From assembly GCF_902652985.1 (NCBI RefSeq), contig NC_047027.1, positions 12,028,001-12,092,000 on the forward strand: 64,000 bases of DNA, in the 5' to 3' direction. Shown here one piece after another: positions 5,711 to 52,625 of the stretch. Origin of the DNA: Pecten maximus. Its lineage: Eukaryota. Position numbers and translations under genes: made by a program. Each line of letters begins with the position of its first letter. Positions within the stretch are counted from its first letter, which is position 1. The notes under the pieces were generated by a model. It ran no database searches, was not told where the DNA came from, and saw nothing but the letters and a program-made list of their open reading frames with translations.

Positions 5711-6291
5711 GTGGACCTTTCTGTTGAGTACAGGTAGCAAATGACCAGGTGTAACTGGGGATAAGATCGATGGTCCTGGTAATCTACTAATAGTTGCTTT
5801 TTGTTGTAGTAACCTATTTACCCTTTGACTATTACGATACTAATTTTCTAAATATAAATGATGTTTTACAACTGATAATTTGCGCTAGCATGTAACCTGT
5901 TACCAAATCGAAATCCACATTTCTTATTTCTCTGAATCAATATTCAATTGCCGTTTGTCGCTATATCAATTGAAGTCTTTTTGAAAGTCAGTCATTGACG
6001 TACATTGAGTGAAGAAAATGTGATAAACTTTCCCCAAGTATTAGGCCCCGTGAACATAGACAAAAACGATACATCAGAATTGTACCTAACACGGGATTTT
6101 AAATCTCATAAAGAATAAAGAATTCAAAATACTGAATTCTTTTCCTCTGACTCCACCAGCAAAAAAGTTTCAAAAGTCTGTTTCTATTTACATTATAGAA
6201 GACTTTAAACGTATTTAATGTTAAATAGCATTAACTCTAACATCAGATTTCGTATAGAGCAAGACATGACCCAACTACCTAAGTACAAATT

Positions 6292-13000: not shown

Positions 13001-14001
13001 AAGGTTATTCCAAAATGATACTTCAATATGAACAGTTATGTCGAAAGACAACTTCCCATGAGGTACAGGGGGATTCCAAGGCCATGTTCAGCTGTAATAA
13101 TTTGAAACCATCAGATTACCAGTACTACACCGGATTTTCCAGTGACAGATTTCACAATTTGGTCAAGTTTTTTATCCCATCAGAAGAAGAGCCATTTACA
13201 TTTACAAAAACAGTGAGTGGAACAAAAAATATTTCTTTGGAAGACCAGCTTCTTCTTGTGCTGATGAAGTTACGACAAAATTTTGATTTTGTACATTTAA
13301 GTAACCTATTCATGTTTTCTTCTCAGGCTTGCAGCACAATATTTTCCAATTGGATTAATTACATGTTTTTCAAACTTGGTTCACTTGTGATTTGGCCCAA
13401 AAGAGAGGAGATAGTGAGGAATATGCCATCGAAGTACAAAGAGGATTTCCCTGACACGATTGTTATCATCGATGGAACAGAACTCAAAATTCAAAAACCA
13501 AGTGCATTAAATCGACAGAGTCAGTGCTACTCGGACTATAAATCCTGTACTACCTTGAAAGCTCTAGTTGGTGTTGATCCCAGAGGATCGGTTATCTTTG
13601 CCTCAATGCTTTTTTCTGGATCTATTTCGGATAAAGTTTTAACCAAAGAAAGTGGTTTTCTTAACCTTCTGACAGACCTCATTGAGCAACAGAAAATAAA
13701 CAGAGGGGATGGTATCATGGCTGACAAGGGTTTCCTTATTGAGGATGAACTGAAGGAACTTGGACTCAAGTTAAATATTCCACCATTTGCTTCAAGTGGA
13801 GCACAGATGAAGCCAGGGGATGTTTCAAAAACTATAAAAATTGCAAAACACAGAGTTCATGTGGAAAGAGCTATTGCACGTATCAAGCAATTTAAAATTT
13901 TGTCTGACAAAATAAGCCTATCTTTATTTGGCTGTATAAACCAAGTTTGGTTAGTTTGTAGTTTGTTGACAAACTTCATGCCATATTTAATACAAGACTG
14001 A
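10087..14001 (+). CDS. THAP-domain DDE transposase (Harbinger/ISL2EU type), 4 exons, 515 aa
   Basis: Exons 10087-10302, 11056-11213, 11705-11781 and 12905-14001. All introns are GT-AG, phases 0/2/1 join in frame, total 1548 nt. The THAP motif C-x4-C...FP...W...VCSK|HF is completed across intron 1. An HTH-like segment LEDQLLLVLMKLRQN follows. Catalytic motifs are IIDGTE, MADKGF and RVHVERAI. Confidence 0.92.
10414..10453. repeat. (GT)n followed by a ~30-nt poly-G tract in transposase intron 1
   Basis: Directly visible in the sequence. Confidence 0.9.
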
Positions 14002-16780
14002 TCTTTTTTGTATTGTGCCTTGTACATGTTCCATTGATACCTCTTTTAGTATACAGTCTAAGATATTTCATGTATTTTATGTTATGCATGGGATATATTG
14101 GTTTGGTTTATTTTATTTTACCTAATACAACCAGGGTCATTTAAGAATGAGCTGGAGTACCCAGAGGAAAACGACCAACCTTCCATCCTAAGGTCACTTC
14201 CAGGCAGTTGCCACAGGGTTTCGAACTTGCAACCCAGAGGTGAAGGGCCAGTGATAAAATGTTATGATCAGGACACCTTGACCCCTTGGCTTCCACGGCC
14301 CATTTAATATGCATGTGAAAGATATTTGGTATGATGTTTAAAATCCCTAGAAAATCAAGTGTTTAACCTTATAAATAATAGTTATAAAACAATTACATTT
14401 GAATATCATGCAGCATACATACATGATAGCTTAGAGCTGAACCAATGAACTGGGGGCCTAATGGGGTATTAACTGTACTTGTGTCACTTCCATTTTCCAC
14501 CAAGTATGAAATGGGGCTGTTGCTGAGACTCTTTAAATGAGCAATATCGGATGTCGTCAGGGGCATTTTCCTGCAATGTAATTAATATATGTGATAAATG
14601 ATATTTAGGTTGAATTCTCTCAACTGTATATTCACATGTTAAACTTCTGCAGTTTAATTGATGAAATTGAAATATGTACATGAATGTATAAACAACAAAA
14701 TTAACCAATTTGTCAATCAAAACCTCAAAGGAAGTTCCACTACACTCTGTGTGTTACAAATAAATTAAACGATATATTGAATGGTGCGACTCATCCTACC
14801 AAAGGAATATGTATCTCAAAGAGTATCATACTATGTATACCTATTGTCAACAAAAGAGGCAATAACTGGTTTCCTTTTCCGATTCATATTGAGTGGTCTG
14901 GATATGACCATCTGCGACACAGGCTCTGGCTTTATTTTATGTCCTCTCGGTTTATCCCACTGCTGTGGTAAACTTGTTGATGAAGGCTGAGAGGGAACTT
15001 CTTTCAATCCAGCGATTTTCCACTCCTCAATTATAACTATCACAGCAAGAATGTGTGCACACTGTCCAGATATTCTGTAAATTTTGGTTTTCAATTATTG
15101 ATCTCTTGCAAACATATCGATGGCAATTGCAGTTGATTGTATTAATATTGACTTTTAAATACATTCCGGTATATACAATAAGGACTGCAAATAAAGAAGG
15201 TAAGATCTAAACAAAGATTTAAATGCTGTTATAAAAATGTACAGTAATTAAATTAGTTTAAAAAAAAAAACCAAGATTGATCAGATAAATCGATTTGTAA
15301 TTTGAATCAAATTTTTATTTTAAAATGTCCTTTAATTCAGTGCCATAATTATTGAGTTACTGAAGTATGTCCACACATATATATATATACATACCCATTG
15401 TTTAATGTTTAAAAATCTGTTTAACAGCTGCATGCATGTTAATATCAGGAACATCAAAATCCGTAAAAAAATTAACTGCTGGAAATGAAAATTTTACTTG
15501 TAGAAAATGTAATGTTGTTTCTGATAGGTAAAAGGAATAATCTTGGTTGTGTAGATGGACTGGACTGGGATGATCAGGATTAATTACCAGGTAGCTCAGT
15601 CATTAGTGTGTCTGGTAATTATAAGAGTACCGGCTGTCCCAGGTTTGAATCCTTTTTTCATTTGATATCTAATTAGGCTGTCGTAGGATGTTAAAAACCT
15701 GATAGCCATACATATTGTAGTCGCTATCATGATATGTGTAATGTAGCCTATTTAGGGCCTATACATCGGTACAATATGTTTTGACATATTCCATCATTGC
15801 TTTTAAATCATTTCATTTTAAACGATATGCATGCACCATTGCAACACGAATTTAATTTTATGATTTAAAAAGAAATATTTTGTGCAAGGACCCCATAACT
15901 TGTTTTAACAGCTTTGGCTTCCATTGGATATTGTAGTGAAAATCCAGGGAGAGCGAGCTGTTTTCTCAACAATATTTTGAAACTTTTTTTCTACTTTGAT
16001 AGATCTACTGATAGGCCTAATTTGGTTACATTGTTACAGTACTAGTCATCACATCAACTCTACTGTCAATAAGGCAAACAGAACATTCCCTTCCGGAATC
16101 AATTTATCTGCTTTGTTGATATCGATCTGTGATATATATTAATATGCTATGTGTACTAAACTGTAGGCCTAATTATTCTGAATTTTAATGTCTGTATTCA
16201 TGTTGTTTTCACAATTTTTAATTAAAATGATTTTTTCTTAATTTACACTTAATATTGTTCTATTTTCACTAGATCAGAATGGGAGATGCAGTGCCATTTC
16301 TATTGCATTTGTGACTCCACTAACGTCATGCATATTTCTTTTTGCCTTTCGTATTCATTCAACGTAACCTTACACACATAGGCTAACATGTTAGGCCTAA
16401 TTGATCACACACTGTACATGCACTCAAACAAAATACAAAAAGAAATAAAAACAAACAAACAACAAACAAATCAGAACATCTTAACTTGTTTATTATTCCT
16501 ACCCAGCTTTACAGCTGCAATGCGCATCTGTGATCTTCCGTTGATCGAGGTCTATATTGATGACAGTTGAGTGAGGGTCCTCCGACTTCCTCTGGCTGCG
16601 GTAAACCCGGGCCGATATACACGCATTTCTGCTGCTTTCGCCGCTAATTGTTACACATTTGATGTAGCTACCTCTTGCAAAAGAAATGGCCTTTTGTTTC
16701 TGTCGCAAGGAAGGAGTATAAGGCAGGTATGCCGCAGAAACGTCGTCGGGTATGTCGCCGAAAGCGGTCTTGCCCGCCAT
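11807..16780 (-). CDS. SWIM zinc-finger plus YqaJ/lambda-exonuclease-like protein, 4 exons, 479 aa
   Basis: Exons 16780-16503, 15074-14841, 14570-14423 and 12586-11807. All introns are GT-AG, phases 2/2/0 join in frame, total 1440 nt. The SWIM motif CSCKAG|ISGQCAH is completed across intron 1. YqaJ motifs are TRSQS..WFTERKKRITASNFG, YGKANE, GATPDAIV, VEIKCP and QVQGQL. Confidence 0.92.
14098..14302 (-). mobile_element. tRNA-derived SINE inside the transposon
   Basis: The minus strand shows an A-box-like GTGGAAGCCAAGGGG, a B-box GTTCGAAACC, a V-domain-like GTTTTCCTCTGGGTACTCCAG and the tail AAATAAACCAAACCAA. Confidence 0.65.
15588..15700 (+). mobile_element. degenerate tRNA-like SINE head inside the transposon
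   Basis: GGTAGCTCAGTC resembles an A box and GGTTTGAATCC resembles a B box. Confidence 0.4.
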
Positions 16781-23121: not shown

Positions 23122-26100
23122 TCACCCATCATGTAATGGAGAAACATAATGCTCATCTGTAGTCCAAAACTTCTTGCTTAAATTAACATTCATACTTTCA
23201 TTTAATTTGACTAGCAACTGTTGAAACACTATATTTTTTGTTATAGAATTTTCCAGGTCTGGAAAATGAACAGCAGACACGTCAGTTTTACGAGGAAAAT
23301 AATCAATTTCTATCTCCTGTAACATCATTCTTCTAAAAGCATAAAAATCCTTAATAGCTTGAAACGACATTTTATCTTAATATGTATTAACAAGTTCATC
23401 CGTCCTTTCTCCATTGAAGAAAGACAGTGATACCGAACGAATAAGGGAATATTCACTAAGAACATGCTGTCGATGGTTAACTTGTGCATTGAGATGCATT
23501 GCTTTCATCCAATAAATATTGTTTTGTCTCATATAACTGTATGTTTCCTCGAATTTTATTTCTAAGATAAACGAAGGGCATGTCCTCATATTAAATGTAT
23601 TTAAAATTACAGCATTTTTAATTACATTTCGAAACATTATCCGTAAGGGAGGTCTAGCATTTATCGATTCATCCCTACTGATGTTAAATCTGTCTAATGT
23701 ATGATTTGAAAATTTTGCTTCTATATCTTGCATATCAGCTGGAGTGAATTTGCTATCTAAAAGCGCCCGAGACAACTCGGGTGATATTTTAGCAAGATCA
23801 GTACATAAGCGCACTAACGGTCGAATGAAAAGCGATTTGTGCATTGCTTTCGTATGATATAAATACGGATGTGTTAACCTCGTTATGAAATGCACGTGTA
23901 CAGGAGCACTCATTAGTGTAGAAACGTTATCTGTGGCAAACATTTGTAAAAATACTAACTCGGCCATTTTGTCCGGAGAAACGTCGACCACAAACTTTTT
24001 ATGTAAAAATTCTATCACGTCAGAATGATCGAAAATCTTAGCAAAATACAAAGGAGTAAATGAATGTACATTTGTACACTTTAGAACGCGTCTGCGGAAA
24101 GCTTTATACATAGTCATTAACAGAGATAAATGACCTTTTATAGCAGCCCTGTGTACCAAACTTAAGTTTTTAGACTTTGGTTTACAGACATCAGCAAATC
24201 TTAGTTTGTTCAAATTCAACATTTGAGATAACATGTATGAAGAAGTCTTGTCAAAGTTCTTTGTCAGATTATAAAAATCCCTTTCGTAGTAATGACGGTA
24301 AAACTGTACTTTACCGTTGTTTATGTAAGACACTTTGTAAGTCATGAATAGACGCGACTTTAAGTGATCCATCAAGTAGATATCTGCATGCGACACACCA
24401 AGGGAAACCAGGTCTATAGCTTGAGAGGAAGGAAGCCCGCGTACAGTCATGCCCCTCTCTATCAAGAACTTCACTGCGACATAATTACCACCCATCACAG
24501 CATGGTGTAGTACATTGTAACCATCTCTATCATAGCATGTTTCCCAAAATGAAATAAGTTGGGATTTCAATACATTAAATGCCTCATCTTTTGTAAAATA
24601 AATCCAGTACCTATTATTTTCATTCCTTATTACTCTGTGAATAAGACTTTCCTCGAAGGTTTTGTTACAAAAGTCAGAGGTGTATTGCGACAATAAGCTT
24701 AACATACCCTTTGCAGGTTTTTCGACAGAAAAGAACGCCCTAAGTAGTTGTTTATCGGCGGATACAACCATATTCCTCGGCTGGAACATAATGATAGAAT
24801 ATAGGATGAATGTGTTACCCTTCATTACGGCCAATCTGTGGTACTTAGGAAAGTCCACTGATCGCTGGATATCTGATATTTTCTCCCGTAAAATCTGAAA
24901 TATTCTATAAATGACCGTTTCTTCCTTGCTCAAAATGCCATCATACTCAAAAAAATGTTGTTTCTTTAAAAGATCTATAATTGAACAGTTATCACATAAA
25001 GTGTTCTCGTGGTGGTGTGGTAAGTTGTCAAATGCAATATCTATAACATTTTTATTCATGTTGTTTACGTCTAATAAAAGTGATATATTAGACCTCAGGC
25101 AAAAAGGTATAATTACCTGATGATTTCCTATTTCAGCCGCAACATGTAGAAAAGTATTTAAGTTGTTGTCTTTTGTTGACGTACTCAACCTGTATTCATC
25201 TAGTAGAAGTAAAATGTCATCTTTACTTGTATATTCTACTCCTAAGACGCGGTAATGAAACAATCCCCTACCTGCTTTGTCTACCAGTTGTTTATTCGCA
25301 ACAACATAATGAGGGAGGATATAACGCCGCATACGACATCAATGCGTTACACAAAACGGCAGAGTGTATCGGCAGAGATCCATTTTTCGCAGACAAAAAT
25401 ACATTACTATCCCCAGCGCTTATAATATATTGTATCATTTCCCATTCGTTATTACAAGCTGCGTAGTGTAACGGCGTATTACCTGATTCATCTTGTACCG
25501 TCCAGTTTAGATATATGCCTTGAGACCGTAGATTTTCCGCTATTTCTTTTTCTCCGTTCATTGCGATAAGATGTTCTATTGTAGTCCCTAGTTGACACAT
25601 GCCATTATCTAAAGCCGTTTTCTCGTTGATATTGAACAATCGGAGGGAGTGTCTATTTGTTACATTGTATAAATGTTCACATTTGTCCGTAAAACTTCCT
25701 CCCTTGTCTAAAATAAGATCAAGTATTTCCGATCGGTTATACCTTACAGCCGTAAGAAGTGGGGTTCTACCTCCATACTCCCGACAATGTAGAGCGTTGG
25801 TTGTTTGTGCTAGTAGATAAGATACTATTTCAGTATAACCTCCTTGAACGGCAACTTCTAAAGCGGTTAAACATTCTATTAATCTTGTATCATCGTTTAG
25901 AACGAATGTCACATTCTCTAACTCTTCGTATTGATTGGGATCTGATAAATCAAAAGAAAAAATATCACTTATGTTAGAATATGGATGCCACTGCATTCGT
26001 TTAGTGATGTTAGCGATCCAGTGAATTCTATCTTCACATTTAACACAAACGTCCTTGACACTATGATTTAACAGTAATAGCACAGACCGCAGGTGACCAT

Positions 26101-29100
26101 TCTTTGCGGCTAAATACAGCGAATGTTGATCAGCTAACGAAGTATTTATTTCTAAAAACCTTTTCAAAATGTCTGCATGACCATGCTCAGCAGCTAAGTG
26201 AACAGCGTTAACACCTAATCCGTTTTTGAAGTATAATAATGAGTGGTTTTTAGACAACAAAACATTCACTACATCTGTGCGTCCATTTTGAGCAGCGATA
26301 TCTAGTAAACCGTAGCCCCATAAAGCTTTATATTTGCAAACGTTAACTACATCTTCCCACCCTCCTTTATTCGGGTGGTTTTGTACTCTAAATGAGTAGT
26401 TGCCACCCTCCTCTATCAGTGCTTTTAGTGTTTCCGAATTCCCAAACGCCGCCGCCAGAAATGAAGCAGTTACATTTGTGGATGTTAGGCTATTGATGTG
26501 TTGACTACCAATAGCTCTAATTAGCAATTTGGTTCCGCGAAAAGAATTTCTCGTTTTGGCCATTAGGTGGAGATGATGTGCTGTATACATATTCTTCAAA
26601 AAGTGTTTGCTGCGTTGGAATGAATGAAGAAGATCAGAATCTGATGACTCGGCCGTGTGTATGAATAGACTTAGTATATCTGTCATACTGTTGTTATGTT
26701 TACTCAAAAGGTAGTTCGCAAACAACTTGTGACCGTTGTGTGTAGAAATGTAATACTTATGATATCCGGAGCTGTTGCTAGTAAGGTAATCACAGATTGC
26801 CTTGTGATATATGCTTATATAGGTTTTGTGTTCAACGAAATTTGAAATTTGGTTTCTGAGCAGATCTCGCAGATCGTATGGATGATTTGTAACATTTAAA
26901 ATGGCTTCCAGTTCATCTAGTTGTAATCTTATATAAGAAGTACATAAAACCTCAAACACATTCCTAGCAACATCGTACAAATGTTCCTTATCACCAAATA
27001 CACGGTCAAGATTATAAGCATATAATTCACTAAGAGACTGGGGGATATCTGTTACTTTACTATGCGGAGAGTCTATCCAGAATTTAACGGCAAGATCCAC
27101 ATATAAAAAATTTGATCTACTGATATTTAAGATATGTTTTGTTACCACCTTCTTATCGGCGTGTATCCCAAACAAACGAGACATCACGGGTTTGTGTATG
27201 AACAGAATTTCTTCGAGATAGGCTGTGATGTCGTTTTGATTCTGGACATTCCCAGGCTCTTCTTGAAGTATTGTCATTTCAGGCAATTTCCTAGTAACTG
27301 CATTTATATTCCTAGCCGTAATAAAGAATTTCAGCCACCATGGCATTTTGCCGATTCGTTTTGATAAGACATCAAGAATAGATATATCGATGGCGGCCGA
27401 AACACCACACTCATCGATAGCGTCAATGACAACATACCTCTCCTCGTCAAATGTAAGTCCGCGTAAAGGATGAATGACTGCGGCGTCGATACAACCAACA
27501 GGATCCTCCGCACACTTGCTAGTTTGTAAAAAGGCCATCGCTAATCGACTAGTCAAAATAGCAAAACCTGCTTCTGGTAACTTACTTATTAACATTCCTG
27601 CGAGGTTTTTAATGAAATAATCTGGTTTCTGTGTACTAATAACGTCAAACTTACAAATGTGATATGATAAAATATAATTTTGTATACCACTTTTACTCGA
27701 CAGCTTACTGGTACAAAGAATGTGTGATACTAACGTAGATTTACCGTACCCCATCTTAGCTGTCAGCAGGATGCCTCTGGAAGGTGTACCGATTAAGGAT
27801 GTTTGGATCTTATCAATAAGCCACTCCCGGCCAAACAGGGGACGACGATCCTGAAGATAGCCGTCGAAAGTAAAATCAGATTCAAATGGACACGGTTTAG
27901 CAAATGTCATCGTTAAACATTCTGAAAAAAAGTTTGAATATTTAAATGAATATATGTACACGAGTGCGAGTGTTAGTTACAGTAGCACGTTGAAGTAAAA
28001 TAGTCTCTTTATAATGTTCAGATACTTAACAATCTCAAAAACGTTTAATGTATAAACCGCATATAAGATACCTTTAAATTAAGATTTTCCCTTTATTTCG
28101 TAAATTAAAAGTGTCCGCAACCACGTTTTCTAAATACTTGAATCAATGAAATGCAATATTACAATTCGATTGGCGTTCAATTCAATTCAATTATTGCGTT
28201 GTATACAGATTAGGCAGCAAAAAAAATTGAAATGTCGATGAAAATATACCACGCTTATATTAGAGAAGCATAATAGGAAATTGACTGACAATAATTGCAT
28301 CTGACTTGTTTCTATAAAAAGAGACTGATATTTCAAAACAAGCCGATTTGATTTTTATTCATCAATTTCGATTTAATCTGCAAATGATAAATTCAAATAC
28401 AATACAATATAGACAGTATATCAAGGAAGAAATTAATAGATGTTGCGACCTTTTCGGGAGTAATATACGACGGAAGAGTAGAGCTTGAGTACAGAAAAGG
28501 TACGTGGAAGAAATTTCGAAGACGAGTGGCTTCCAATTTTTCAAATTACACTATCATTACATTCGATTACATATTTTTATTTCCCGTAAATCGACCAATT
28601 TCGAATTGCGTTCCCTTTCCCTTATCTGTTTAACATTACCTTTTTCATCGCTGAGTCCTTTCCTAGTTGTATCATTCCAACGGATGTTAACCACCCAGCC
28701 AATCACGAGGATAAGTATACATACTATCAATGAGGCAAGTAAGTATTTTCTGTATCCGTCATTGTTCTCTTCGTCACGCACACATAATCTCATTTCCTGA
28801 ATGTTTTCATTTCGGTCCAATATATCTCTTTGGGCGTCGTCGTGTGGATTCAATGCAAGGACCAGATGGTTCTTAATATTGTCATCCTCTGTTATAAGAT
28901 CTAAAACGCATCTTGATTTTAAACGTTTCAGTTGTGAAATAGCCAGTTTGCCACTCCCGGTTCGAGAGATTTCTGGGAGGTTGAGGAATGAAATAAGATT
29001 CCTTAAAGCGGCCTTCTTTTTTGTATTACTTACTTGAAGATGTCCATGAGCGAACAGGGCGTTCCGAACATCTCTAACACGCTGACAAGTCAGAACAGGA

Positions 29101-29534
29101 ATGTTAAATTTTGTACAGTTGTGTAACACATGTAATCCTACAGAAAGGTCTTCTGTGAATGGAGTCCTTACCCTCCACCATTCTGGGGCGAAAGCCTTCA
29201 CCATCTCGTCGACATTTTTGGGCAAATCTGATGAATTAATCTCTTCCCATTTGATGTGTCTTTTTCTTGCCCTGTATTTGTTATATAACATGATTTGTTC
29301 TTTCCATTTGATACACGTCGGACACCATGTTGAAAACTTTCGTTGGGTCTTGCTACAGTTTCTTCCACAGATCGGCAGTTGTGCGCATGCTCCATACTTT
29401 ATGTCGTGGTGCAAAGCTAGAAAAGTACCCTCCAGATATTCTGATATTCCCTTTGTCGTAACAGAAATTGCTACAGCCACGTCAAGCCAATTGGAAAAGT
29501 CGATGTCTCGAATCTGTTGATGTAGCGAATCCAT
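23122..29534 (-). pseudogene. Paralog A: HEPN(DUF4559/CXorf38-like)-TM-NACHT-ankyrin gene, disrupted (pseudogene or truncated 1174-aa form)
   Basis: Coding exons 29534-28640 and 27921-23122 with a phase-1 GT-AG intron at the same position as in B and C. Motifs: RNALFAH, TM YLLASLIVCILILVIGWVV, Walker A AKMGYGKS, Walker B VVIDAIDEC. There is a 4-nt insertion (CCCT, ~25312-25315) relative to C and an in-frame TAA at 23379-23377. Confidence 0.85.
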
Positions 29535-33420: not shown

Positions 33421-34699
33421 GTCAAGTTTGAATTTAAAAGTTTTAAGTGTAAAAAATAAAGTTTTTGTATATTATATTATAAGATACTATACATGTATTG
33501 TAGTTATATTTTTATACTGGTAAGTTAGTAAATTAGGACAATTTTAATCTATGAACTATATATGTATAATTGTAAGTCGTATCCGAAAATCAAGGTAATA
33601 GAAGGGAAAGTGTATACTGTTATTGCACAATATGATTAATATTAATAGTACTACGTGTATTTTCTTATATCTATCAATATTTGTGTCACAAAAGGAGATA
33701 ATAAATACATTATACATTTTTGTCATACAGTCTTTTTGCCATCGCTTTCTTGATTTTTATAATATATATGATGTTTATATTACTGATTTGCATAAAGACT
33801 TGCACATCTTATATTGTATATCAAACTTTTCTTGCAATGATTTGTTAAATTCGTAAATATTATATTTCGGAACAAATTATATGCTTTTTTCTATGATGTA
33901 CTGTGGGCTGGAGGCCTTAAATACTGAATAAAATAAAAGTTAGTTAATGAATTAAATACCTTTATAATTTATGTAATACTGCACATCGAGTTTCCTCGAA
34001 ATATTTTCAAATTTACTCACGATATCGTGTAAAAATAACGAAGAACAATTACGGTATAAGCTAGAAACAAATCCATCGTCGAACTTGTACCAGATCTGAT
34101 TGATATAAGGCTGTATACCAAATTACATCAAAATCTATTCATGTGTATTCTAGTTATCGTTTTTAATAGAAAAAAGTTGACATATGACTACCAAAGAAAG
34201 GGGATAACCATGAACCTTCAGCCCAGGTAACCTAAAATACCAAATCTTAAACAAGTATTACAAACCTCCACAACATCGGCCACAAGCAGTACTGGGCCAT
34301 TTTGTTCACTGTTCCTTACACCACATACGCCTGCACTTAAAGAGTCTCTTTCAACATTTCACTCACTCCAATCATTTAATACACTGCCATTCATTGTTTT
34401 TAGTTCCTCCATTAATAATATCCTGATATAATTTTAATACCAACATTTTAAATCACAATATTAGGAGCATATGTTGTCAATTTTATTTCTAGTCCCTTGT
34501 TTGGGTGTATATGATAACCGGGAACTGCTGCGTAGTCAGTAATAAAATGTACTTCCTGATGGAAAACAACATCACCGTTACCATTTTCAGTTTAAACATA
34601 TCTCTGTAATTGCACAATCTAATACCCACAGTAATATTCACAGTAATGCTTTTACCTGTAAGCTCACTGAATTGAAGTATTGAACGTCAGTATCCGACG

Positions 34700-34870
34700 C
34701 AGTGGTAGCGAGTGTGATAGACCGTGAATTGCTCTCCTTTGATTGGACAGGTGTTTGAGATTGGGTGAGTACAATTATAAACACGGTCTTTTTCACCTTG
34801 ACTGGGATCTTAAACAGACTCCTCGTAGGTACGTTATAATCCAGCCATTTCTGTAATATTTTGCAAGCTT
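34700..34870 (+). promoter_or_regulatory. candidate core promoter and short non-coding first exon of paralog B
   Basis: Reverse CCAAT box GATTGG at 34741, TATAAA at 34776 and donor CGTAG|GTACG at 34829. The block is conserved with 46770-46930 upstream of paralog C. Confidence 0.6.
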
Positions 34871-36925
34871 TCATATACTACAGAATGATAAGATAGTATG
34901 TAAGTATTTTACATGTATTTGTGTACAGCATTTACTGACACTGTATCAACGCTATCCGGTCCTGGGTGATATTGAAGCCGTGGAGCATTACTTTGTGTTT
35001 ATTACATCTACCCAGACCATGTTTGTGTCTACTGGTGATATATTGTTGCTTTCTGTTATAATTTTCTCTGACTCAGATCATTAAATACCAACAAGTACAT
35101 ATTAAACTATGTAATGGAGATCTAGGGTTGACTGAGTATATATCGCCTGCTATCGATTGCGGGTGTTATCGGCTTTTATTTTAGTTTATGCTCTATTTGA
35201 GAAGGTATCCCACTAGGCTAGACCTTTGTCTGTCATGTATAGAACTATGACGATGATTCTAAATTTAGGTTGAAGTGGTGGGGTTTTATTGTGTAGAGGT
35301 AACTCACTTCCTGTTTATTGTTTGTAAGCAGCATGCCTGTGTTGATATTTTATTACATTTCCCATTATTGAACATTTGATACAGTTAATTTATGAAAATC
35401 TTATAAATTGCAATATCGTTTCGCTTTCGCTTTAATCCTTTCAATGCTATTCTTATGTCTGGAAATTTATCGATCGAAATTATTTTGTGAGCTTTATGAA
35501 ATAATCATTATTGTGATTTCATTAAGGTTTTATGAGTGACATCAGATGGTTGCTTACTTTCGGTTTATATTCCTGGAAGTTTCCTTTTCTTAGTAAATTG
35601 TCAAATTCTCTTTCACTTTTGGTTTAGAAAATGTGTGAAAATATGATTTTGTGTTTAAGGTGTCTTCTATTTCAAACAGGAACAAAAATTATTTCATGTC
35701 CTATAAGTTAACGGAACGTGACACCATATAAAACCGTGTAGCCGGTTTAATATGTTTTTCGTAGAAATATTTCATACCCTGACATATTGTGGGTTATATG
35801 GTTCTCATCAGATATATTGAGTTTGATTGTGTAGATTTCCTGTAAACCTCAATACTCTTCTATGAGGTCAAGAATCAAATACTTATCAAATGGGAGGGTT
35901 CCATATTTTGTGGTTGTAATGTTCATACATTCTGTATTGCATCTGCCTATATGTCATAAGTATCAATTGTATTCATTAGACTTTATACGGCAATTTACAG
36001 TGTTTCGGTCAGTGTAAAAATACAGCTCTAGGTGTAACATATTAAAACAATGGCCGCCAGTTACTGTTCCGGTATTTTAACTTGATGACGTCAGTGATAG
36101 GGGTCCCAGGGGTTGTTTGATTGTAAGTTGTCCATTGGTCTGTCTACAGTGAACTAGTGTTCACTTCCACGATCAAATCAGTGTCTTCTCGGAGTCCCTG
36201 GCTAGGTCAGGTGAGCGTTAGTATGCTGTGTTAACATTCATATGTAGGTTGATTTTGTGTTTTAATTGAACAGAACAAAATCACAATAATTGTTTTAGAT
36301 AAATGCATTGATCAATCATTTCCTAGTTAAAAACTGGAATTAAATGTTTCGTTGCCAACGTCTCTATCTTGATATTTTCTTATGTCCCCATTCCACGTGA
36401 CTGGCACGAACAACCTCATGATCGGTAATTTGGCAACCCATTAACGTATCTCTTCGTACAAATTAACATGATACAATAATTCATCATTTAAAAACATGAC
36501 AATTTGTTGAACGTTTCTCTAATTATTCACGTACAATTATTCAAATGTTTTAAAAACGGGCCTTATTTGACAAAGTGTCATCTTATTTACTACTGTTTTG
36601 ATAAATTTGACGACTTTTTGCATTTCCGTAAGAATGTAAAGCACTTTTCTTTGCTTTTGCACAACTACCTTCACGCACTATATAAGGCATATATAGAGCC
36701 ATTTAACAGTTGCAAACATTCGCTTCAGTTCAAGAACACGCCATATTAATTAGTTTTGACGTGGATTTATTACCCAGGTGACCCTATCGTAGTGGCATAC
36801 CTTCCTGCTGCTACTTTTTGGTTTTTTTATCATCTATGTTTGTCTCGAAAAGAAATTTTGTCAAAATAAATTGCAAAGGTATCAGTTTGTTATTAATGTT
36901 CATTCTTTGTTTTAGACTCATTACT

Positions 36926-39900
36926 ATGGATGCACTACATCAACAGATTAGAAACATCGACTTTTCAAACTGGCTTGACGTGGCTGTAGCTATTTCTGTT
37001 ACGACAAAGGGAATATCAGAATATCTGGAGAGTACTATTCTAGCTTTGCATCAAGAAATAAAAAATGGAGCATGCGCACTGTTACCGAACTGCAAACAGA
37101 ACTGCAGCAAGACTTTACGAAATTTCTCAACATGGTGTCCGACCTGTGTGAAATGGAAGGGACAAATTAAGTCATATAACAAATACAGGAATAGAGAGAG
37201 GAAAATAAAATGGGGAGACATCAATTCATCAGACTGGCCCCGGAATGTCGACGAGATGGTAAAGGTGTTCGCCCCAGAGTGGTGGAGAGCTAGGACTCCA
37301 TACACAGAGGACCTCTCTGTAGCGCTGCATGTCATTCAAAACTGTACGAAATTCAACATTCCCGTTCTGATTTGTCAGCGTGTAAGAGATGTTCGGAACG
37401 CCCTGTTCGCTCATGGACATCTTCAAGTAGACAATGCCGAAAAGAAGAACGCTTTCAGGATTCTTCTTACAATCCTCAAACTGCCAGAAATCTCTCAAAC
37501 CAGATCTGGTCGATTGGCTATTTCTCAACTGAAACGCTTAAAATCAAAATGTGTTATTGACCTTATGACAGAGGACGAAGCTTTTCGACATCACTTGGTC
37601 CTTGCCCTGAATCCCTACAAGGACACTGATAGAGAAATATTGAACCAATATGAACACGTGAAGGAATTGAGACTATGTTTACGTGAAGATCAAAACGGTC
37701 AATTACAACGAATATTGACAGAGCGAACACGAATTGTCGGTAGAGTATATGGAAATGGGCGATTTGCAATTGCCTTGATAATTTCTTTCATATGTATAAT
37801 TATTATCCTGTTAAATATTGGTCACAGGGATGACACGACATGGGAAGGACTACACAATGAGAAAGGTAGGTTTGCTTTGTGTCTTCAGATCAAATAACCT
37901 CCGATTTTTTTGATTTTTTTTTTGGAGGGGGGATGGGTGACGATAACACACTCTGTCTTTCAAAATGTTTTATCCCAGCGACTATTTTATCTAACACATG
38001 ATATTTAAAAGAGAAGGCAACAATTTAATAATTAAGAAAAAAAGTTATGATGCTGAATAATTGGTAGACTTCTATAGAGCACCAGATTTATCTTCTAGAA
38101 CTTGTCAGTAATGCCACAGACAAATTTCGTAATATTTTCTAATAAATCGGATATATTTTCCTTAATATTTTCGTCAAGTGACAAGATAAGGAGTGTTTTG
38201 CTCTTTTATGCAGGTATTGATTGTCATGTCATGAGTTTGCGTGAGAAAATCATGTCGTTTTCTCACAAATTCACGACGATACTCTCAACAAGACTGCATT
38301 ACGAAAGGACAGAATAATATGATTACAAAATTTTGTTTCCTCCGACGAACTATAGTATAGGAAAATAACTGATTTTGCCTTTCAGGTTGTTTGCCGATGA
38401 CGTTTTCTAGCCCCTGCCCATGGAAACCTGATTTTACCTTCGACGGCTATCTGACAAATCGTCCTATCCTCATTGGGCGGAATTGGCTTATCGACAAGAT
38501 TCAAACATCTCTATTTGGAACATCTTCCAGAGGTATCCTGCTGACAGCAGAAATGGGTTACGGTAAATCTACGCTAGTATCGCATGTACTTTGTACCGGT
38601 GAATTAACAGAAAGAAAATTGTTACACAGTTATATTTTATCATATCACATTTGTAAGTTTGACGTTATCAGTACACAGAAACCAGATTATTTCATAAAAA
38701 ATCTCGCAGGAATGTTAATTAGTAAATTGCCAGAAGCAGGTAACGCTATTTTAACTGATGAATTAGCAATGACCTTTTTAGAAACAAGCAAGTGTGCAGA
38801 GGATCCTGTTGGTTGTATCGATGCCTCAATCATTCATCCTTTACGCGGACTTACATTTGACGAGGAGAGGTATGTTGTCATTGACGCCATTGATGAGTGT
38901 GGTGATTCGGCCGCCATTGGCATGTCTATTCTTGATGTCTTATCAAAACGAATCGGCAAAATGCCATGGTGGCTGAAATTCTTCATAACGACTAGAAACA
39001 TATATGCGGTAACTAGTAAATTGTCTGAAATGGAAATACTTCATGAAGTGCCTGGAAATGTTCAGAACCAATACGACATCGCTGCCTACCTCGACAACAA
39101 TCTGTTCTTAAACAGACCCGTGTTATCTCGTTTGTTTGGTACACATGCTGATAAGAAGGTAGTAACGGAACACATTTTAAAGATAAGTGGATCCAATTTT
39201 TTATATGTGGATCTCGCTGTAAAATTTTGGATAGACTCCCCGCACAGCAAAGTAACAGATATCCCCCAGTCTCTTGGTGAATTATATGCTTATAATCTTG
39301 ACCGTGTATTTGGTGCCAAGGAACATGTGTACGATGTTGCTAGGAATGTGTTTGAGGTTTTATGTACATCTTATAAAAGATTACAATTAGAGGAATTGGA
39401 AGCCATTTTAAATGTTACAAATCATCCATACGATCTGCGAGATCTGCTTAGAAATCAAATTTCCCATTTCGTTGAATACAAAACCTATATAAGCATATAT
39501 CACAAAGCAATCTGTGATTACCTTACTAGCAACAGTTCCGGATATCATAAGTATCACATTTCTACACACAACGGTCACAAATTGTTTGCGAACTTTTTTT
39601 TGAGTAAATACAACAACAGTATGAACGACGTACTAAGTCTATTCATACACGTGGCCGAGTCATCAAATTCTGATCTTCTTTATTCATTCCAACACAGTAA
39701 ATACTTTTTGAAGGAGAACATGTCCTCGATACGCCATCTTCACCTTATGGCAAAAACGAAAAATTCGTTTCAAGGTACAAAATTGCTAATTCGAGCAATT
39801 GGAATTCAACACATTAATAGTTTAACATCCGCAAACGTAACTGCTACATTTCTGGCGGCGGCGTTCGGTAATTCAGAAACACTTAAAGCGCTGATAGACG

Positions 39901-42900
39901 AAGGCGGAGATTATTTATTTAGAACTCAAAATCCCCCGAATAAGGGAGGATGGGAAGACGCTATTGCGTTCTGCAAATATAAATCTTTGTGGGGTTACGG
40001 ATTACTAGATATCGCTGCTCAAAATGGACACGTAGAAGTAGTGAATGTTTTGTTGGCTAAAAACATCTCATTGTTATACTTCAAGAACGGGCTAGGCCTT
40101 AATGCCGTACACTTAGCTGCCGAACATAGCCATACAGACATATTACAGAAGTTTCTGGAAATAAAAAGTTCGTTAGCTGATCAGTATTCGCTGTATTTAG
40201 CCTCAAAGAATGGTCATTTGCGATCTGTGCTGTTATTGCTAAATCATGGTGTCGAAGACGTTTGTGTTAAATGTGAAGATAGCATTCACTGGATCGCTAA
40301 CAACACAAAGAGAATGCAATGGCATCCATGTTCTAATATAACTGATAGTTATGACTGTGATCCGATATTGATTGGTAAATACAATGAGTTAGATAATGTG
40401 ACATTCGTTCTAAATGATGATACAAGATTAATAGAATGTTTAACCGCTTTAGAAGTTGCCGTTCAAGGAGGTTATACTGAAATAGTATCTTATCTACTAT
40501 CACAAAAAACCAACGCTCTACATTGTCGGGAGTATGGAGGTAGAACCCCAGTTCTAACGGCTGTAAGGTATAACCGATCTGAAATACTTGATCTAATTGT
40601 AGACAAGGGAGGAAGTTTTACGGACAAATGTGAACATTTATACAATGTCACAAATAGACACTCCCTCCGATTGTTCAATATCAACGAGAAAACGGCCCTA
40701 GATAATGGCATGTGTCCACTCGGGGCTACAATAGAACATATCATCGCAATGAATGGAAGAAAAGAAATAGCTGAACATCTGCGGTCTCAAGGCATATCTC
40801 TAAACTGGACGGTACAAGATGAATCAGGTAATACGCCGCTACACTACGCAGCTTGTAATAACGAATGGAAAATGATTCAATACATCATAAGCGTTGAAGA
40901 TAGTTATGTATATCTGACTTCGAAAAATGGATCCCTGCCGATACACTCTGCCGTTTTGTGTAATGCATTTATGTCATATGCAGTGCTACATCCGTATTAT
41001 TTAAAAATGTTAAAAACTATTAAAAAACTTGTAGACAGCGCTGGTAAGGGATTGTTTCATTACCGTGTCTTAGGTGTAGAATATAATAAGGACGTAAGAG
41101 ATACAATAGATCTGCTAACAACAGATGAATATAGACTGAACACGGCAGTAAAAGATAACAACTTAAATACTTTTCTACATGTTGCGGCTGAAATAGGAAA
41201 TCATCGGATCATTATACCTCTGTGTTTACGTTCTAATACGTCACTTTTATTAGAAGTAAATAACATGAATCAGAATGTAATAGATATTGCATTTGACAAC
41301 TTACCACACCATCAAGAGGACACATTATGTTTTAACTGTTCAGTCAGAGATCTTTTTACAAAACAACAAAATGTTATGTATGATGGCGTTTTAAGCAAGG
41401 AAGAAACGGTTATTTATAGAATATTTCAGATTTTACGAGAGAAAATATCGGATATCCAGCGATCAGTGGACTTTCGTAGGTACTATAGATTGGCCGTAAT
41501 GAAGGGTAACACATTCATCCTATATTCTATCATTATGTTCCAGCCAAGGCCTCTGGTTGTACCCGTCGATAAACAACTACTTAGGGCGTTCTTTTCTGTC
41601 GAAAAACCTGCAAAGGGTATGTTAAGTTTATTGTCGCAATTCACCTCTGACTTTTGTAACAAAACCTTTGAGGAAAGTCTTGTTCACAGAGTAATAAGGA
41701 ATGAAAATAACAGGTACTGGATTTATTTTAAATTATGTGAGGCTTTTGAAGTTTTGAACACCCGGCTTATTTCATTTTGGGAAACATGTTATGATAGAGA
41801 TGGTTACAATGTACTACATCATGCTGTGATGGGTGGGAATTATGTCGCAGTGAAGTTCTTGATAGAGAGTGGTATAACTGTACGCGGGCTTTCCTCCTCT
41901 AAAGCTATAGATCTGATTTCCCTTGGTGTGTCGCATGCAGATATCTACGTGATAGATCACCTAAAGGCACGACCATTTATGACATACAAAGTGTCCTACA
42001 TAGAAAACGGTAAACTGTCGTTTATTAAGCATTACAATGAAGATTCTTTTTACAGGCTGACAAAGAACTTTGACGAGACCTCTTCATACATTTTATCTTC
42101 AATATTGAAATGGAACAAACTAAGGTTTGCACATTTCTGTAAACGAAAGTCTAAACAGTTAAGTTTGGTACACAGGGCAGCTATAAAAGGCCATTTGTCT
42201 CTGTTAATGACCATGTATAAAGTTTTTGGTAGACGCGTTCTACAATGTGCCAATGTACATCTATTTACTCCGTTGTATTTTGCTAAAGTTTTCGATCATT
42301 CTGACGTCGTAAATTTTTTAGGAAGAAAATTAGTGGCTAACCTTCTTCCATACAAAATGGCCGAATTAGTATTTTTACAAGTGTTTGCGGCAGATGACGT
42401 TTCTGTACCAACAAATGTCCCAGCCCACGTGCACATCATAACAAAGTTAACTCATCCATATTTATATCATATGAACCCAGTGTACAAGTTATTTGTCCGG
42501 CGAACGTTCGCGCGATTGTGTTTCGATGTTGTTAAAACGTTACCGGAACTTGGTTCGGTGCTTCAGAAAAGTACATTTAATTCGGCTGATATACATGATA
42601 CTTTATCTCCCTTTTCAAATCATACATTGAAAATGTTAAACATTACCAGAGATACACCAATAAATGAAGAACCCGATTTAAGTGAAAACATGCAAATTTT
42701 AGTTAATGCGACAATGAAAAAAAGTGCAGATTTGGCATGGGCATGTCCCCAGATAGTTTGGGCCTTGAGGTACGAGGACTTTTGTGTCTGGCAAAGAAAA
42801 AAGATAAATTTTTGTATTTTGTCTGAGATTCATTCCTCACTCACCAATATTCACAAACTTTATACTTGGTTTCAGTTTTCAGTAATCAATTCGAGATCAC

Positions 42901-43202
42901 TTTCATATTTTCATACAGACAGAATTCTTCAATTATACAATCATTACATGGTAGATATGTCCTTTCAAACTATTAAGGAATTTTATGCATTTAGGAGGAA
43001 ATCATTAACTGATATGGAAAGTGATATTTTCCCACGTTATTCCAATGTATCTACGACTCACTTTCGGTCCTTGGCATATTCAATTAATGAACTTCTATTG
43101 AGTAAACAGAAATTAGTTATGATAAAGAAGTTAACGGCGTTTAATCCGAGAATAAAGTTCTGGCATAAGATCGATAAATTGCCATTTCCATTATACGAAT
43201 AA
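36926..43202 (+). CDS. Paralog B: intact 1918-aa HEPN(DUF4559/CXorf38-like)-transmembrane-NACHT/STAND NTPase-ankyrin repeat protein
   Basis: Exons 36926-37865 and 38386-43202 (AAAG|gtagg ... ttcag|GTTGT, phase 1, 5757 nt open). The N-domain FSNWL...CKQNC...CPTCVKWK...W...WP...EMVKVFAP...NCTKF...VRNALFAH follows the CXorf38 pattern. TM FAIALIISFICIIIILLNIG at 37763-37822. Walker A AEMGYGKST at 38547, Walker B YVVIDAIDEC, sensor FITTR. Ankyrin motifs include GLNAVHLAA, GRTPVLTAV, GNTPLHYAA, GYNVLHHAV and FTPLYFA. Confidence 0.9.
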
Positions 43203-51552: not shown

Positions 51553-52625
51553 GTATGTTTTCTTGCATATTTTGTATGTGTATATGGGGTGATGTGTATA
51601 ACATTGTATGTTTTCTAGCATATTTTGTATGTGTTATGGGGAAATGAGTATAACATTGTATGTTTTCTAGCATATTTTGTATGTGTATACGGGGTGATGT
51701 GTATAACATTGTAAGTTTTCTGGCATATTTTGTATGTGTATATGGAGTGATGTGTATAACATTGTATGTTTTCTAGCAGATTCTGTATGTGTTATGGGGT
51801 GATGTGTATAGCATTGTATATTTTCTACCATATTTTGTATGTGTATATGGGATGATGTGTATAACATTGTATGTTTTCTGGCATATTTTGTATGTGTATA
51901 TGGGGTGATGTGTATAACATTGTATGTTTTCTAGCATATTTTGTATGTGTATATGGGGTGATGTGTATAACATTGTATGTTTTCTAGCATATTTTGTATG
52001 TGTATATGGGGTGATGTGTATAACATTGTATGTGTTCTGGCATATTTTGTATGTGTATATGGGGTGATGTATATAACATTGTATGTTTTCTAGCATATTT
52101 TGTATGTGTATATGGGTAATGTGTATAACATTGTATGTTTTCTAGCATATTTTGTATGTGTATATGGGGTGATGTATATAACATTGTATGTTTTCTAGCA
52201 TATTTTGTATGTGTATATGGGGTGATGTGTATAACATTGTATGTTTTCTAGCATATTTTGTATGCGTGTATGGGGTGATGTGTATAACATTGTATGTGTT
52301 CTGGCATATTTTGTATGTGTATATGGGGTGATGTATATAACATTGTATATTTTCTGGCATATTTTGCATGCGTATATTGGGTGATGTGTATAACATTGTA
52401 TGTTTTCTAGCATATTTTGTATGTGTATATGGGATGATGTGTATAACATTGTATGTGTTCTGGCATATTTTGTATGTGTATATGGGATGATGTGTATAAC
52501 ATTGTATGCTTTCTAGCATATTTTGTATGTGTATATGATGGTAATGTGTATAACATTGTATATTTTCTAGCATATTTTGTATGTGTATATGGGATGATGT
52601 GTATAACAGTGTATGTTTTCTGGCA
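51553..52625. repeat. 53-bp minisatellite, ~20 copies
   Basis: Unit TGTATGTTTTCTAGCATATTTTGTATGTGTATATGGGGTGATGTGTATAACAT, period 53 (51921 and 51974). Confidence 0.97.

Follow-up and report, generated by a model that had tools for sequence, protein, structure and literature searches.

Since a gene of the scallop Pecten maximus appeared to place one hydrophobic helix between a HEPN domain and a NACHT-ankyrin module, we asked whether these two parts could really lie on opposite sides of a membrane, which would be very unusual for this class of immune-type protein. The window that we analyzed is a 64,000-nucleotide stretch of P. maximus DNA (NC_047027.1, positions 12,028,001 to 12,092,000), and all coordinates below refer to it. 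An earlier note, made from the sequence alone, had proposed a type II (N-in, C-out) topology, with a cytosolic HEPN controlled in an Ire1-like manner by a luminal or extracellular STAND-ankyrin ectodomain, and with a P-loop that might bind luminal or extracellular nucleotide. We found that every sequence feature listed in that note is present where it was said to be, so that the observation itself is confirmed. Its interpretation, however, is only partly supported, as described below.

We first verified the gene model. The focal gene lies on the forward strand, with its ATG at 36926 and its stop codon at 43202. RNA contigs from two sequencing runs (X1 and X2) join 37865 to 38386 with 180-191 letters on the shorter side of the joint, showing that a phase-1 GT..AG intron (37866-38385) is spliced out in frame, and this intron was left essentially uncovered (zero depth). 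An X1 contig also shows the joint 34828^36916 (GT..AG), which adds a 5' non-coding exon of which the part seen in RNA spans 34762-34828. This exon has no ATG in any frame and an in-frame TGA lies just upstream, at 34740, so that no signal peptide is supplied as far as the transcript is seen. That an upstream exon might do so had been named beforehand as a possible refutation of the topology. Independently, a 5,944-nt Logan contig from another bivalve encodes an uninterrupted 1,870-aa HEPN-helix-NACHT-Ank ORF (P0252).

We then characterized the domains, searching the products of the two coding exons separately. Coding exon 1 (36916-37865) encodes a CXorf38/DUF4559-type HEPN domain (Pfam PF15112, E 8.6e-22, 78.4 bits against a gathering cut-off of 27), followed by the hydrophobic helix and a short stalk. 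The HEPN R-N-x4-H motif (RNALFAH, 37394-37414) has R157, N158 and H163 invariant across bivalve homologs in our two alignments (A1 and A2). A cysteine cluster C-x5-C-x3-C-x10-C-x2-C (aa 50-74, 37073-37147) is inserted in the domain, with C56, C60, C71 and C74 invariant in both alignments, and resembles by sequence the Zn ribbon described as an insert of CXorf38 HEPN domains (PMC3710099). The AF2 model of the exon 1 product is all-alpha, with a pLDDT of 82. Foldseek against PDB returned nothing, and VIA-align gave only weak matches, with Z scores of 4.1-4.9 to the Swt1 C-terminal domain (4pqz) and to HEPN entries (2hsb, 3o10) that are within the noise for helical bundles. Coding exon 2 (38386-43202) begins with a conserved motif C-L-P-x-x-F...D-F-x-F-D-x-Y-L (38388-38453), whose first Cys is an invariant column of A2 (C294) and lies 8-26 residues after the helix end in the members tabulated. 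It continues with a NACHT-like NTPase (NPHP3_N, PF24883, E 3.8e-15, 56.9 bits against a cut-off of 24.8), a helical, putative winged-helix part, ankyrin repeats (Ank_2, E 9e-40) and a C-terminal helical region. Walker A (GYGKST, 38556-38573; G, G, K and S) and Walker B (VVIDAIDEC, 38874-38900; D, A, D, E and C) are invariant in the family. The winged-helix model HTH_TANC1 scores 16 bits, below its cut-off of 27, in the focal protein, but 33.5 bits, above the cut-off, in its relative P0034. The ankyrin-repeat region (39834-41882) includes a Cys-rich insert (CVKC at 40263). Since only ankyrin repeats, and no leucine-rich repeats, were found after the NACHT, the protein is NLR-like and not an NLR in the strict sense.

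To evaluate the membrane segment, we scanned the hydrophobicity of the whole product. The ORF starts with MDALHQQIRNIDFSNWLDVAVAIS, and the most hydrophobic 19-residue segment of its first 270 aa has a Kyte-Doolittle (KD) mean of only 1.23 and is placed by the AF2 model inside a confident helical domain; there is no signal peptide. By contrast, FAIALIISFICIIIILL (aa 280-296, 37763-37813) has a KD of 3.1-3.4 and a summed Hessa scale of -4.7 kcal/mol, and AF2 models it as one long helix that is not packed on the HEPN domain (pLDDT 50-70). Nothing else in the remaining 1,900 aa exceeds a KD of 1.35, leaving no candidate for a second spanning segment. The helix is followed by the juxtamembrane stretch NIGHRDDTTWEGLHNEK(G) (37814-37865; net charge -2). 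It is kept in the two other copies of the gene in the window with unrelated sequence, as LLASLIVCILILVIGWVV in copy A (28689-28742, minus strand) and as IAILPCILIVAVFLIYA in copy C (54601-54651, plus strand), and the three copies share basic residues before the helix and a DTT..G..(E/K)(G/E)C stretch after it.

To test whether the helix is a general feature of this architecture, we looked at relatives in other genomes. It is present in every relative with this NACHT-ankyrin module, in Pecten, Argopecten, Ylistrum, Mytilus, Pinctada, Ostrea, Ruditapes, Mercenaria, Mya and Sinanodonta. Bivalve models without it (P0008, P0010, P0013 and others) begin at or just before the post-helix Cys motif and look as if they had lost exon 1, while in the Mizuhopecten model P0002 the HEPN runs straight into CVPLTC, which may reflect exon skipping or a model error. 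The helix also occurs with a DZIP3-type HEPN (P0034/35) and in a Branchiostoma HEPN-helix protein with another STAND type (P0212). Stand-alone CXorf38 homologs of a frog (P0189, helix 324-340 of 344 aa) and of a fish (P0249) carry the same kind of helix at their very C-terminus, with the chain ending 3-4 residues later, as in tail-anchored proteins, which always face the cytosol. In the focal protein, about 1,620 residues follow the helix, so that post-translational tail-anchor insertion cannot apply. The charges flanking the helix agree with a cytosolic HEPN: +3 before and -2 after it in the focal protein, and on average +2.0 against -0.26 among 19 homologs, the N flank being more positive in 14, equal in 4 and less positive in 1. 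The three local copies and the chromosome-15 paralogs had first suggested that this bias is not conserved, an impression that was reversed by this wider sample. Altogether, the N-in half of the proposed topology is well supported.

To test the C-out half, we compared N-x-S/T sequons on both sides of the helix. The counts given in the earlier note are exact, with 20 sequons in the exon 2 product, the first at residue 342, and 4 in the exon 1 product, and that note had taken them as weak support only. A wider comparison gave much more statistical support than was anticipated there, although this support is still indirect: protein parts that follow an internal helix had 343 sequons observed for 218 expected in a first set, 208 for 144 in a second set and 16 for 7.8 in the amphioxus protein, or 553 for 357 in total when using local-block shuffles (sd 17), an enrichment of about 1.5-fold. 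Five kinds of control were near 1.0: HEPN sides (0.98-1.04), fungal NACHT-ankyrin proteins (0.91-0.93), helix-free HEPN-STAND fusions (0.84-0.97), a C-terminally anchored relative, P0227 (1.01), and the reverse motif S/T-x-N in the post-helix sets (0.98-1.00). The enrichment spares the NTPase core (0.95-1.04) and reaches 1.45-1.9 elsewhere, with most of the excess in the ankyrin region (1.8-1.9). We considered that it might come from the ankyrin G-x-T-P-L-H consensus, but while G-x-S/T is also enriched in fungal ankyrin proteins (1.42), N-x-S/T is not (0.91), and the excess is also seen outside the ankyrin region. Recurrent positions nevertheless explain part of it: most sequon columns are lineage-specific (112 of 141), but when about a dozen recurrent positions, some of them tied to ankyrin motifs, are removed, the excess among ten divergent members falls to about 1.15-fold. 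In addition, the homologs are related, so that their counts are not independent, the amphioxus replication rests on a single protein, and the controls include no close helix-free relative of exactly this NACHT-ankyrin family, since the helix-free bivalve models, initially tried as cytosolic controls, look truncated and show the same enrichment (1.43). Eight nearly invariant cysteines also follow the helix, one pair of which (C629/C684), in the ankyrin region, covaries perfectly.

Our preferred interpretation, which we consider slightly more likely than not, is that the gene encodes a single-pass type II membrane protein of a family found in every bivalve genus sampled, with its NACHT-ankyrin part in the lumen or outside the cell. 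What the data show directly is a spliced mRNA that joins a CXorf38-type HEPN domain, one hydrophobic helix and a NACHT-ankyrin module in one frame, the absence of any visible signal peptide and the retention of the helix in all relatives carrying this module. The rest is inferred from sequence, including the RNase activity of the HEPN domain, metal binding by its insert and the exposure and glycosylation of the C-terminal part. In this view, the helix would descend from the C-terminal anchor of stand-alone CXorf38-type HEPN proteins and would therefore hold the HEPN domain, a predicted RNase, on the cytosolic face of a membrane. Because of the residues that follow, it would act as a co-translational signal anchor, and the NACHT-ankyrin part would be threaded into the ER lumen, N-glycosylated outside its NTPase core, and stay in the secretory pathway or reach the cell surface. 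Ligand binding by the ankyrin/C-terminal region and nucleotide-dependent oligomerization of the NACHT module would then cluster the helices and bring the cytosolic HEPN domains together, which is the usual way HEPN RNases are switched on (as in Ire1 and RNase L), so that RNA would be cut at that membrane. Both the Ire1-like control and the binding of luminal or extracellular nucleotide remain inferences. Against this view, STAND NTPases and ankyrin repeats are cytosolic in practically every characterized case, including the relatives of this module (TANC, NPHP3, ANKRD50 and fungal NLRs), and the invariant Walker motifs imply that a nucleotide supply is needed on the far side of the membrane. 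In its boldest form, which we see as about as likely as not, animals would have built at least twice, in bivalves and in amphioxus, an inside-out NLR-like receptor by extending a tail-anchored CXorf38-type HEPN RNase with a glycosylated STAND sensor lying in the ER lumen or outside the cell and signalling across the membrane by clustering the cytosolic RNase, which would be a working STAND NTPase outside the cytosol and a second, independent invention of Ire1-like logic. If the NACHT-ankyrin part does lie on the far side of a membrane, NLR-type sensing, which is textbook cytosolic sensing, would extend to the secretory pathway or the cell surface, raising the question of how a P-loop switch is fuelled there and giving a simple, testable model of signalling across a membrane to a HEPN RNase.

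Some elements of this architecture have been described before. CXorf38-family HEPN proteins fused to NACHT, ankyrin, CARD, Death or dsRBD are known (Anantharaman et al. 2013, PMC3710099) and share the HEPN family, the R-N-x4-H motif, the inserted Cys cluster and the N-terminal position ahead of a STAND NTPase and repeats. That paper, however, lists no membrane helix for this family, and our literature searches found no description of a helix in CXorf38 proteins or of HEPN-helix-NACHT proteins. Ire1 and RNase L also use a HEPN-type (KEN) RNase switched on by oligomerization, with a luminal sensor and a cytosolic RNase in Ire1 and an ankyrin-repeat sensor in RNase L. Ire1 is nevertheless type I, with a signal peptide and a kinase domain, RNase L is soluble, and neither has a STAND NTPase. 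Since the Pfam search gave no kinase or KEN match, the focal protein does not belong to the Ire1 family, and there is no sequence relationship beyond the HEPN superfamily: the resemblance is one of logic only. Sea cucumber membrane NLR-like proteins, AjNLRC4 and AjNLR-new (PMC8699970, PMC13133943), are animal NACHT proteins with membrane helices, and AjNLR-new is reported with its NACHT outside the cell, a claimed precedent (PMC13133943). They have Ig domains and no HEPN, use another NACHT type and come from another phylum, and AjNLR-new has two helices. TANC1/2, NPHP3 and ANKRD50-type P-loop proteins and fungal NACHT-ankyrin NLRs share the NPHP3_N-type NTPase, the ankyrin repeats and, as seen above the cut-off in relative P0034, the TANC-type winged helix, but are soluble cytosolic proteins without HEPN or a helix. 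ATF6/CREB3-type ER proteins resemble the focal protein in layout only, with a long cytosolic N-terminal effector, one signal-anchor helix and a luminal sensor part, but their domains are unrelated and they signal by proteolytic release rather than by an RNase.

The rival that survives best, although we find it unlikely, is a membrane-tethered but fully cytosolic NLR-like protein, in which the helix would attach the protein to a membrane without carrying the 1,600-residue C-terminal part across, being half-inserted, shielded until activation or inserted only after oligomerization, like the N-terminal helices of plant resistosomes or MLKL. HEPN and NACHT-ankyrin would then work side by side in the cytosol, as in ordinary HEPN-NACHT proteins. 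All characterized relatives of both modules are cytosolic, and the Walker motifs are invariant. Helix-free CXorf38-HEPN-STAND fusions exist in unionid mussels, and other helix-free CXorf38-HEPN fusions, without a recognized STAND P-loop, in amphioxus and fishes. Moreover, P0227, a HEPN-NB-ARC-TPR protein anchored by a C-terminal helix, shows that a cytosolic, membrane-tethered version exists. However, the helix consists of 16-23 uniformly hydrophobic residues (KD 1.9-3.6), which is the length of a spanning helix and too short for a hairpin, no second hydrophobic segment could bring the chain back, and AF2 does not pack the helix on the HEPN domain. This reading also does not explain why sequons are enriched only after internal helices and not in P0227 or in helix-free relatives. 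Even if both parts turned out to be cytosolic, the family would remain an old, unannotated class of membrane-bound HEPN-NACHT immune-type proteins, present in all bivalve groups sampled, and the link to tail-anchor-like CXorf38 homologs would still give a first clue to where that uncharacterized vertebrate protein family works.

Two further readings appear very unlikely. In the first, the working membrane protein would be a short tail-anchored HEPN protein made from unspliced or early-terminated mRNA, the NACHT-ankyrin ORF would be translated on its own from an ATG at 38397, and the fused form would be a minor by-product. Exon 1 alone does encode a complete tail-anchor-like protein, with a stop 10 codons into the intron, an ATG follows the acceptor in the three local copies, and 310-aa read-through forms are on record next to the 1,870-aa form. 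This two-gene model was rejected because spliced contigs occur in two RNA runs, the frame across the junction is kept in all bivalve lineages, and the Met is not conserved, being Leu in the chromosome-15 paralogs and in Argopecten and other residues in Mytilus and clams, while the 310-aa forms are simply unspliced DNA or pre-mRNA read through the donor. In the second, the orientation would be reversed, with a luminal or extracellular HEPN-like domain and a cytosolic NACHT-ankyrin part, like a receptor with an NLR-type signalling domain. This would keep NACHT and ankyrin in the cytosol, a sea cucumber NLR with an outer Ig domain and an inner NACHT has been described (PMC8699970), and the N-terminal domain holds a conserved N-C-S and several cysteines. 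However, without a signal peptide, 260-290 folded residues with a zinc-ribbon-like insert would have to cross the membrane, and the flank charges, the tail-anchor-type helix of stand-alone relatives and the sequons at expectation on the HEPN side all speak against it. An upstream in-frame stretch of the focal copy (MFVSKRNF...LLLMFILCF) does look like a signal peptide, but it lies in the 5' intron, is spliced out and is absent from the other copies. An Rfam search of 34000-38500 returned nothing.

The other copies in the window have features that the earlier note had not recognized. Copy A (23377-29534, minus strand) has the same architecture, with a frameshift near 25292-25332 where the NCBI model P0003 stops. 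Copy C (53787-60853, plus strand) is a pseudogene, with a frameshift near 54390, a TAA inside Walker A at 56267 and further frame breaks near 58660 and 59530. Although two of the three copies are thus broken and the NCBI model of the focal gene is a chimera, a decaying gene cluster without function, in which the architecture is an accident of exon fusion tolerated because the genes are dying, is the least likely reading, since the focal copy has an intact 1.9-thousand-codon reading frame and is transcribed and spliced, and since the architecture, the HEPN motif, the Walker motifs and many cysteines are conserved across at least ten bivalve genera.

The window of Pecten maximus holds three paralogs of one gene, and five further paralogous loci lie elsewhere in the genome. 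The focal copy is intact and consists of a 5' non-coding exon seen from 34762 to 34828, an intron from 34829 to 36915, coding exon 1 from 36916 to 37865 with the ATG at 36926, a phase-1 intron from 37866 to 38385 and one giant exon from 38386 to 43202. The other two copies are broken: copy A (minus strand, 29534-23377) has a frameshift near 25300, while copy C (53787-60853) is a pseudogene, with a frameshift near 54390, a TAA in Walker A at 56267 and later frame breaks.

The exon-1 product matches Pfam DUF4559 (E 8.6e-22), a family that was classified as the CXorf38 family of HEPN domains, with an inserted Zn ribbon, predicted to be active and fused in some animals to NACHT, ankyrin, CARD, Death or dsRBD (Anantharaman et al. 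2013, PMC3710099). The R-N-x4-H motif (R157, N158, H163) and four cysteines of the insert are invariant in bivalve homologs. An AF2 model of this part (pLDDT 82) is an all-alpha domain up to about residue 240, followed by one uninterrupted helix, 243-310, which contains the hydrophobic stretch and is not packed on the domain (pLDDT 50-70). Structure searches with this domain gave only weak helical-bundle matches, with HEPN entries and the Swt1 C-terminal domain among them at Z 4-5. The exon-2 product has an NPHP3_N-type NACHT-like NTPase (E 3.8e-15) with intact Walker A and B motifs, followed by ankyrin repeats.

Since the earlier note had described a single transmembrane helix lying between the HEPN and the NACHT-ankyrin parts, without any N-terminal signal peptide, we first aimed at verifying each element of this observation, and all of them held. 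The helix FAIALIISFICIIIILL (aa 280-296) has a Kyte-Doolittle (KD) mean of 3.1-3.4 and a summed Hessa scale of -4.7 kcal/mol, and nothing else in the protein exceeds KD 1.35, so that there is neither a signal peptide nor a second or re-entrant helix, the latter having been set beforehand as a condition that would contradict the proposed topology. The helix is kept, with unrelated sequence, in copies A and C. The N-x-S/T sequon counts were also as the note had given them, with 20 after the helix, the first at residue 342 of the exon-2 product, and 4 before it.

To test whether the two coding exons are indeed joined and whether an upstream exon might supply a signal peptide, we examined contigs of RNA runs. 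Contigs of two runs (X1 and X2) join 37865 to 38386 (GT..AG) with 180-191 letters on the shorter side and give no cover inside the intron, showing that the HEPN-helix exon is spliced in frame to the NACHT exon. One contig joins 34828 to 36916, so an upstream exon exists, as the earlier note had suspected, but the 67 bases of it that are seen in contigs, which cannot fix the true 5' end, hold no ATG in any frame, and an in-frame TGA lies at 34740. A signal-peptide-like ORF extension found just upstream of the ATG in the focal copy is intronic and is absent from the other copies. Inside the same 5' intron, a 37-40-nt stretch at 36064-36103 that contains the palindrome TGACGTCA is covered by very deep short contigs in all four RNA runs (word depth about 1,300 in X1 and X2); it has no Rfam match and is probably part of a high-copy repeat. 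One 389-nt contig of run X1 links 39624 in exon 2 back to 21 bases of the intron between the coding exons (37903-37923), with 27 unrelated letters between, and is probably an assembly chimera.

The NCBI model of the focal gene (LOC117340258, P0001, 382 aa) uses the same junction between the two coding exons, but it leaves the NACHT exon at 38566, right after the Walker A GYG codons, and joins the first coding exon of pseudogene copy C (53777-53805) 15 kb downstream, out of frame, ending after 9 residues. It is therefore a chimera, probably caused by paralog cross-mapping, and no annotated protein of 880 aa or more covers the intact focal NACHT-ankyrin ORF. Independently, a 5,944-nt Logan contig of another bivalve encodes an uninterrupted 1,870-aa HEPN-helix-NACHT-Ank ORF (P0252), whose 310-aa cluster mates are the same exon 1 read through the donor into the intron.

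To determine how widespread this architecture is, we searched databases with the two exons separately, then with an alignment of full-length homologs and finally, exhaustively, with the exon-1 product. Every protein found that combines a CXorf38-type HEPN with the GYGKS-type NACHT-ankyrin module has the helix, in the genera Pecten, Argopecten, Ylistrum, Mytilus, Pinctada, Ostrea (KD 1.9), Ruditapes, Mercenaria, Mya and Sinanodonta. A Mizuhopecten yessoensis gene model (P0002, 405 aa) does lack it, running from the HEPN domain straight into the Cys motif that otherwise follows the helix, which could reflect an alternative donor that removes the helix or a model error; an alternative donor in the same phase (AACG|GTCAAT) exists in the focal gene at about 37695, but no RNA contig uses it. 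The same NACHT-ankyrin module also occurs behind a DZIP3-type HEPN plus helix (proteins P0034/35), and a Branchiostoma protein (P0212) has a CXorf38-HEPN, a helix and then a different P-loop STAND. Helix-free CXorf38-HEPN fusions exist as well, including nSTAND3 proteins of unionid mussels, proteins in amphioxus and dsRBD proteins of eels and lungfish, while one HEPN-NB-ARC-TPR protein (P0227) carries its only helix at the very C-terminus.

These searches also gave an indication of where the helix may come from. Stand-alone CXorf38 homologs of a frog (P0189: 344 aa, DUF4559 at 9-304, helix at 324-340) and of a fish (P0249: 350 aa, helix at 331-347) end 3-4 residues after a strongly hydrophobic helix, which is the layout of tail-anchored membrane proteins, although we found no paper that mentions a helix in CXorf38 proteins. 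Tail-anchored proteins have their N-terminal domain in the cytosol, and exon 1 of the scallop gene is exactly such a module. We infer that the bivalve genes arose by extending a tail-anchored HEPN protein with a NACHT-ankyrin exon, making no claim about the human protein.

We next asked on which side of the membrane each part may lie. A cytosolic N-terminal part is supported by the absence of a signal peptide, by a long folded N-domain with a zinc-ribbon-like insert and by the tail-anchor-like relatives. Flank charges agree: the mean net charge of the 15 residues before the helix is +2.0 and that of the 15 after it is -0.26, with the N flank exceeding the C flank in 14 of 19 homologs, equalling it in 4 and being lower in 1.

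A C-terminal part on the far side of the membrane is the default consequence for a single internal signal anchor. To test the idea, raised in the earlier note as weak support only, that sequons may bear on this orientation, we compared observed N-x-S/T counts (x not P) with those expected from composition-preserving shuffles. The parts after the helix showed 343 observed against 218 expected in 19 bivalve proteins (ratio 1.57), 208 against 144 in a second set of 14 (1.45) and 16 against 7.8 in the amphioxus protein P0212 (2.05), the latter replication resting on one protein. By contrast, ratios were 0.98-1.04 for the HEPN sides, 0.91 for fungal NACHT-ankyrin proteins, 0.84 for unionid helix-free HEPN-STAND proteins, 0.97 for other helix-free fusions and 1.01 for the C-terminally anchored P0227, these controls including no helix-free close relative of exactly this NACHT-ankyrin family. 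The reverse motif S/T-x-N was at 0.98-1.00 in the post-helix sets and showed no excess beyond 1.20 in any set, which rules out local composition as the cause. When shuffles were confined to 40-residue blocks, the pooled figure was 553 against 357 (sd 17), that for 13 divergent members was 250 against 159 (sd 11.5), and controls stayed at expectation. Since the homologs are related, however, these counts are not independent events. By region, the NTPase core is at expectation (0.95-1.04), while the helical/winged-helix part is at 1.85, the ankyrin region at 1.8-1.9 and the C-terminal region at 1.45, so that the note's remark that the core is free of sequons becomes "not enriched" at family level. 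Among ten members that share 24% identity, 112 of 141 sequon columns are private to one lineage, but if the roughly 12 recurrent sequon positions are removed, some of which sit on ankyrin motifs, the excess among these ten divergent members falls to about 1.15-fold.

Eight cysteines after the helix are invariant or nearly so in 30 sequences. One pair (C629 and C684 of the exon-2 product) is present together in 20 sequences, absent together in 10 and never present alone, which fits a disulfide or a shared metal site, but may also reflect a single loss in one clade.

HEPN-NACHT fusions are well known in bivalves and cnidarians, mostly of the DZIP3 type (PMC9646362, PMC8260672), and CXorf38-NACHT fusions were noted in 2013 (PMC3710099), but none of these papers mentions a helix between the two parts. 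Membrane NLR-like proteins have been reported in a sea cucumber: AjNLRC4 has an Ig domain outside and a NACHT inside, whereas AjNLR-new is reported with an extracellular NACHT (PMC8699970, PMC13133943). An exoplasmic NACHT therefore has one published claim, in another phylum and with other domains. The layout also resembles that of Ire1 (outer sensor, inner HEPN-type RNase) and of ATF6-type type II proteins, but the protein is not a member of either family.

Altogether, the observation of the earlier note is confirmed and extended: the helix is an old, obligatory part of this family and most probably derives from a tail anchor. The note's interpretation, a cytosolic HEPN controlled by a luminal or extracellular STAND-ankyrin part, is partly supported. 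While the in-frame splicing, the single helix and its conservation were seen directly in transcripts and sequences, the tail-anchor origin, the side on which each part lies, the RNase activity of the HEPN domain and the control of this predicted RNase by the outer part are inferred. A cytosolic HEPN is well supported. An exoplasmic NACHT-ankyrin part is the best-supported reading and in our view somewhat more likely than not, but it is unproven. NACHT and ankyrin outside the cytosol contradict almost all precedent, and the invariant Walker motifs would require a nucleotide supply there. The main rival, a membrane-tethered but fully cytosolic protein, appears unlikely.

Beyond the three paralogs, the region 10087-16780 contains two convergent ORFs (11807-12340 on the minus strand and 13015-14001 on the plus strand), one resembling a transposase-type DDE nuclease and one a YqaJ-like exonuclease. 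Between the focal gene and copy C, an ORF at 52142-52636 is made of tandem copies of a unit of about 30 residues (…HIHIQNMLENIQCYTHH…) and is most likely a tandem DNA repeat. Finally, positions 1-6000 show a strong strand asymmetry (GC skew about 0.19, AT skew about 0.24) and a higher G+C content (0.44-0.45) than the rest of the window.
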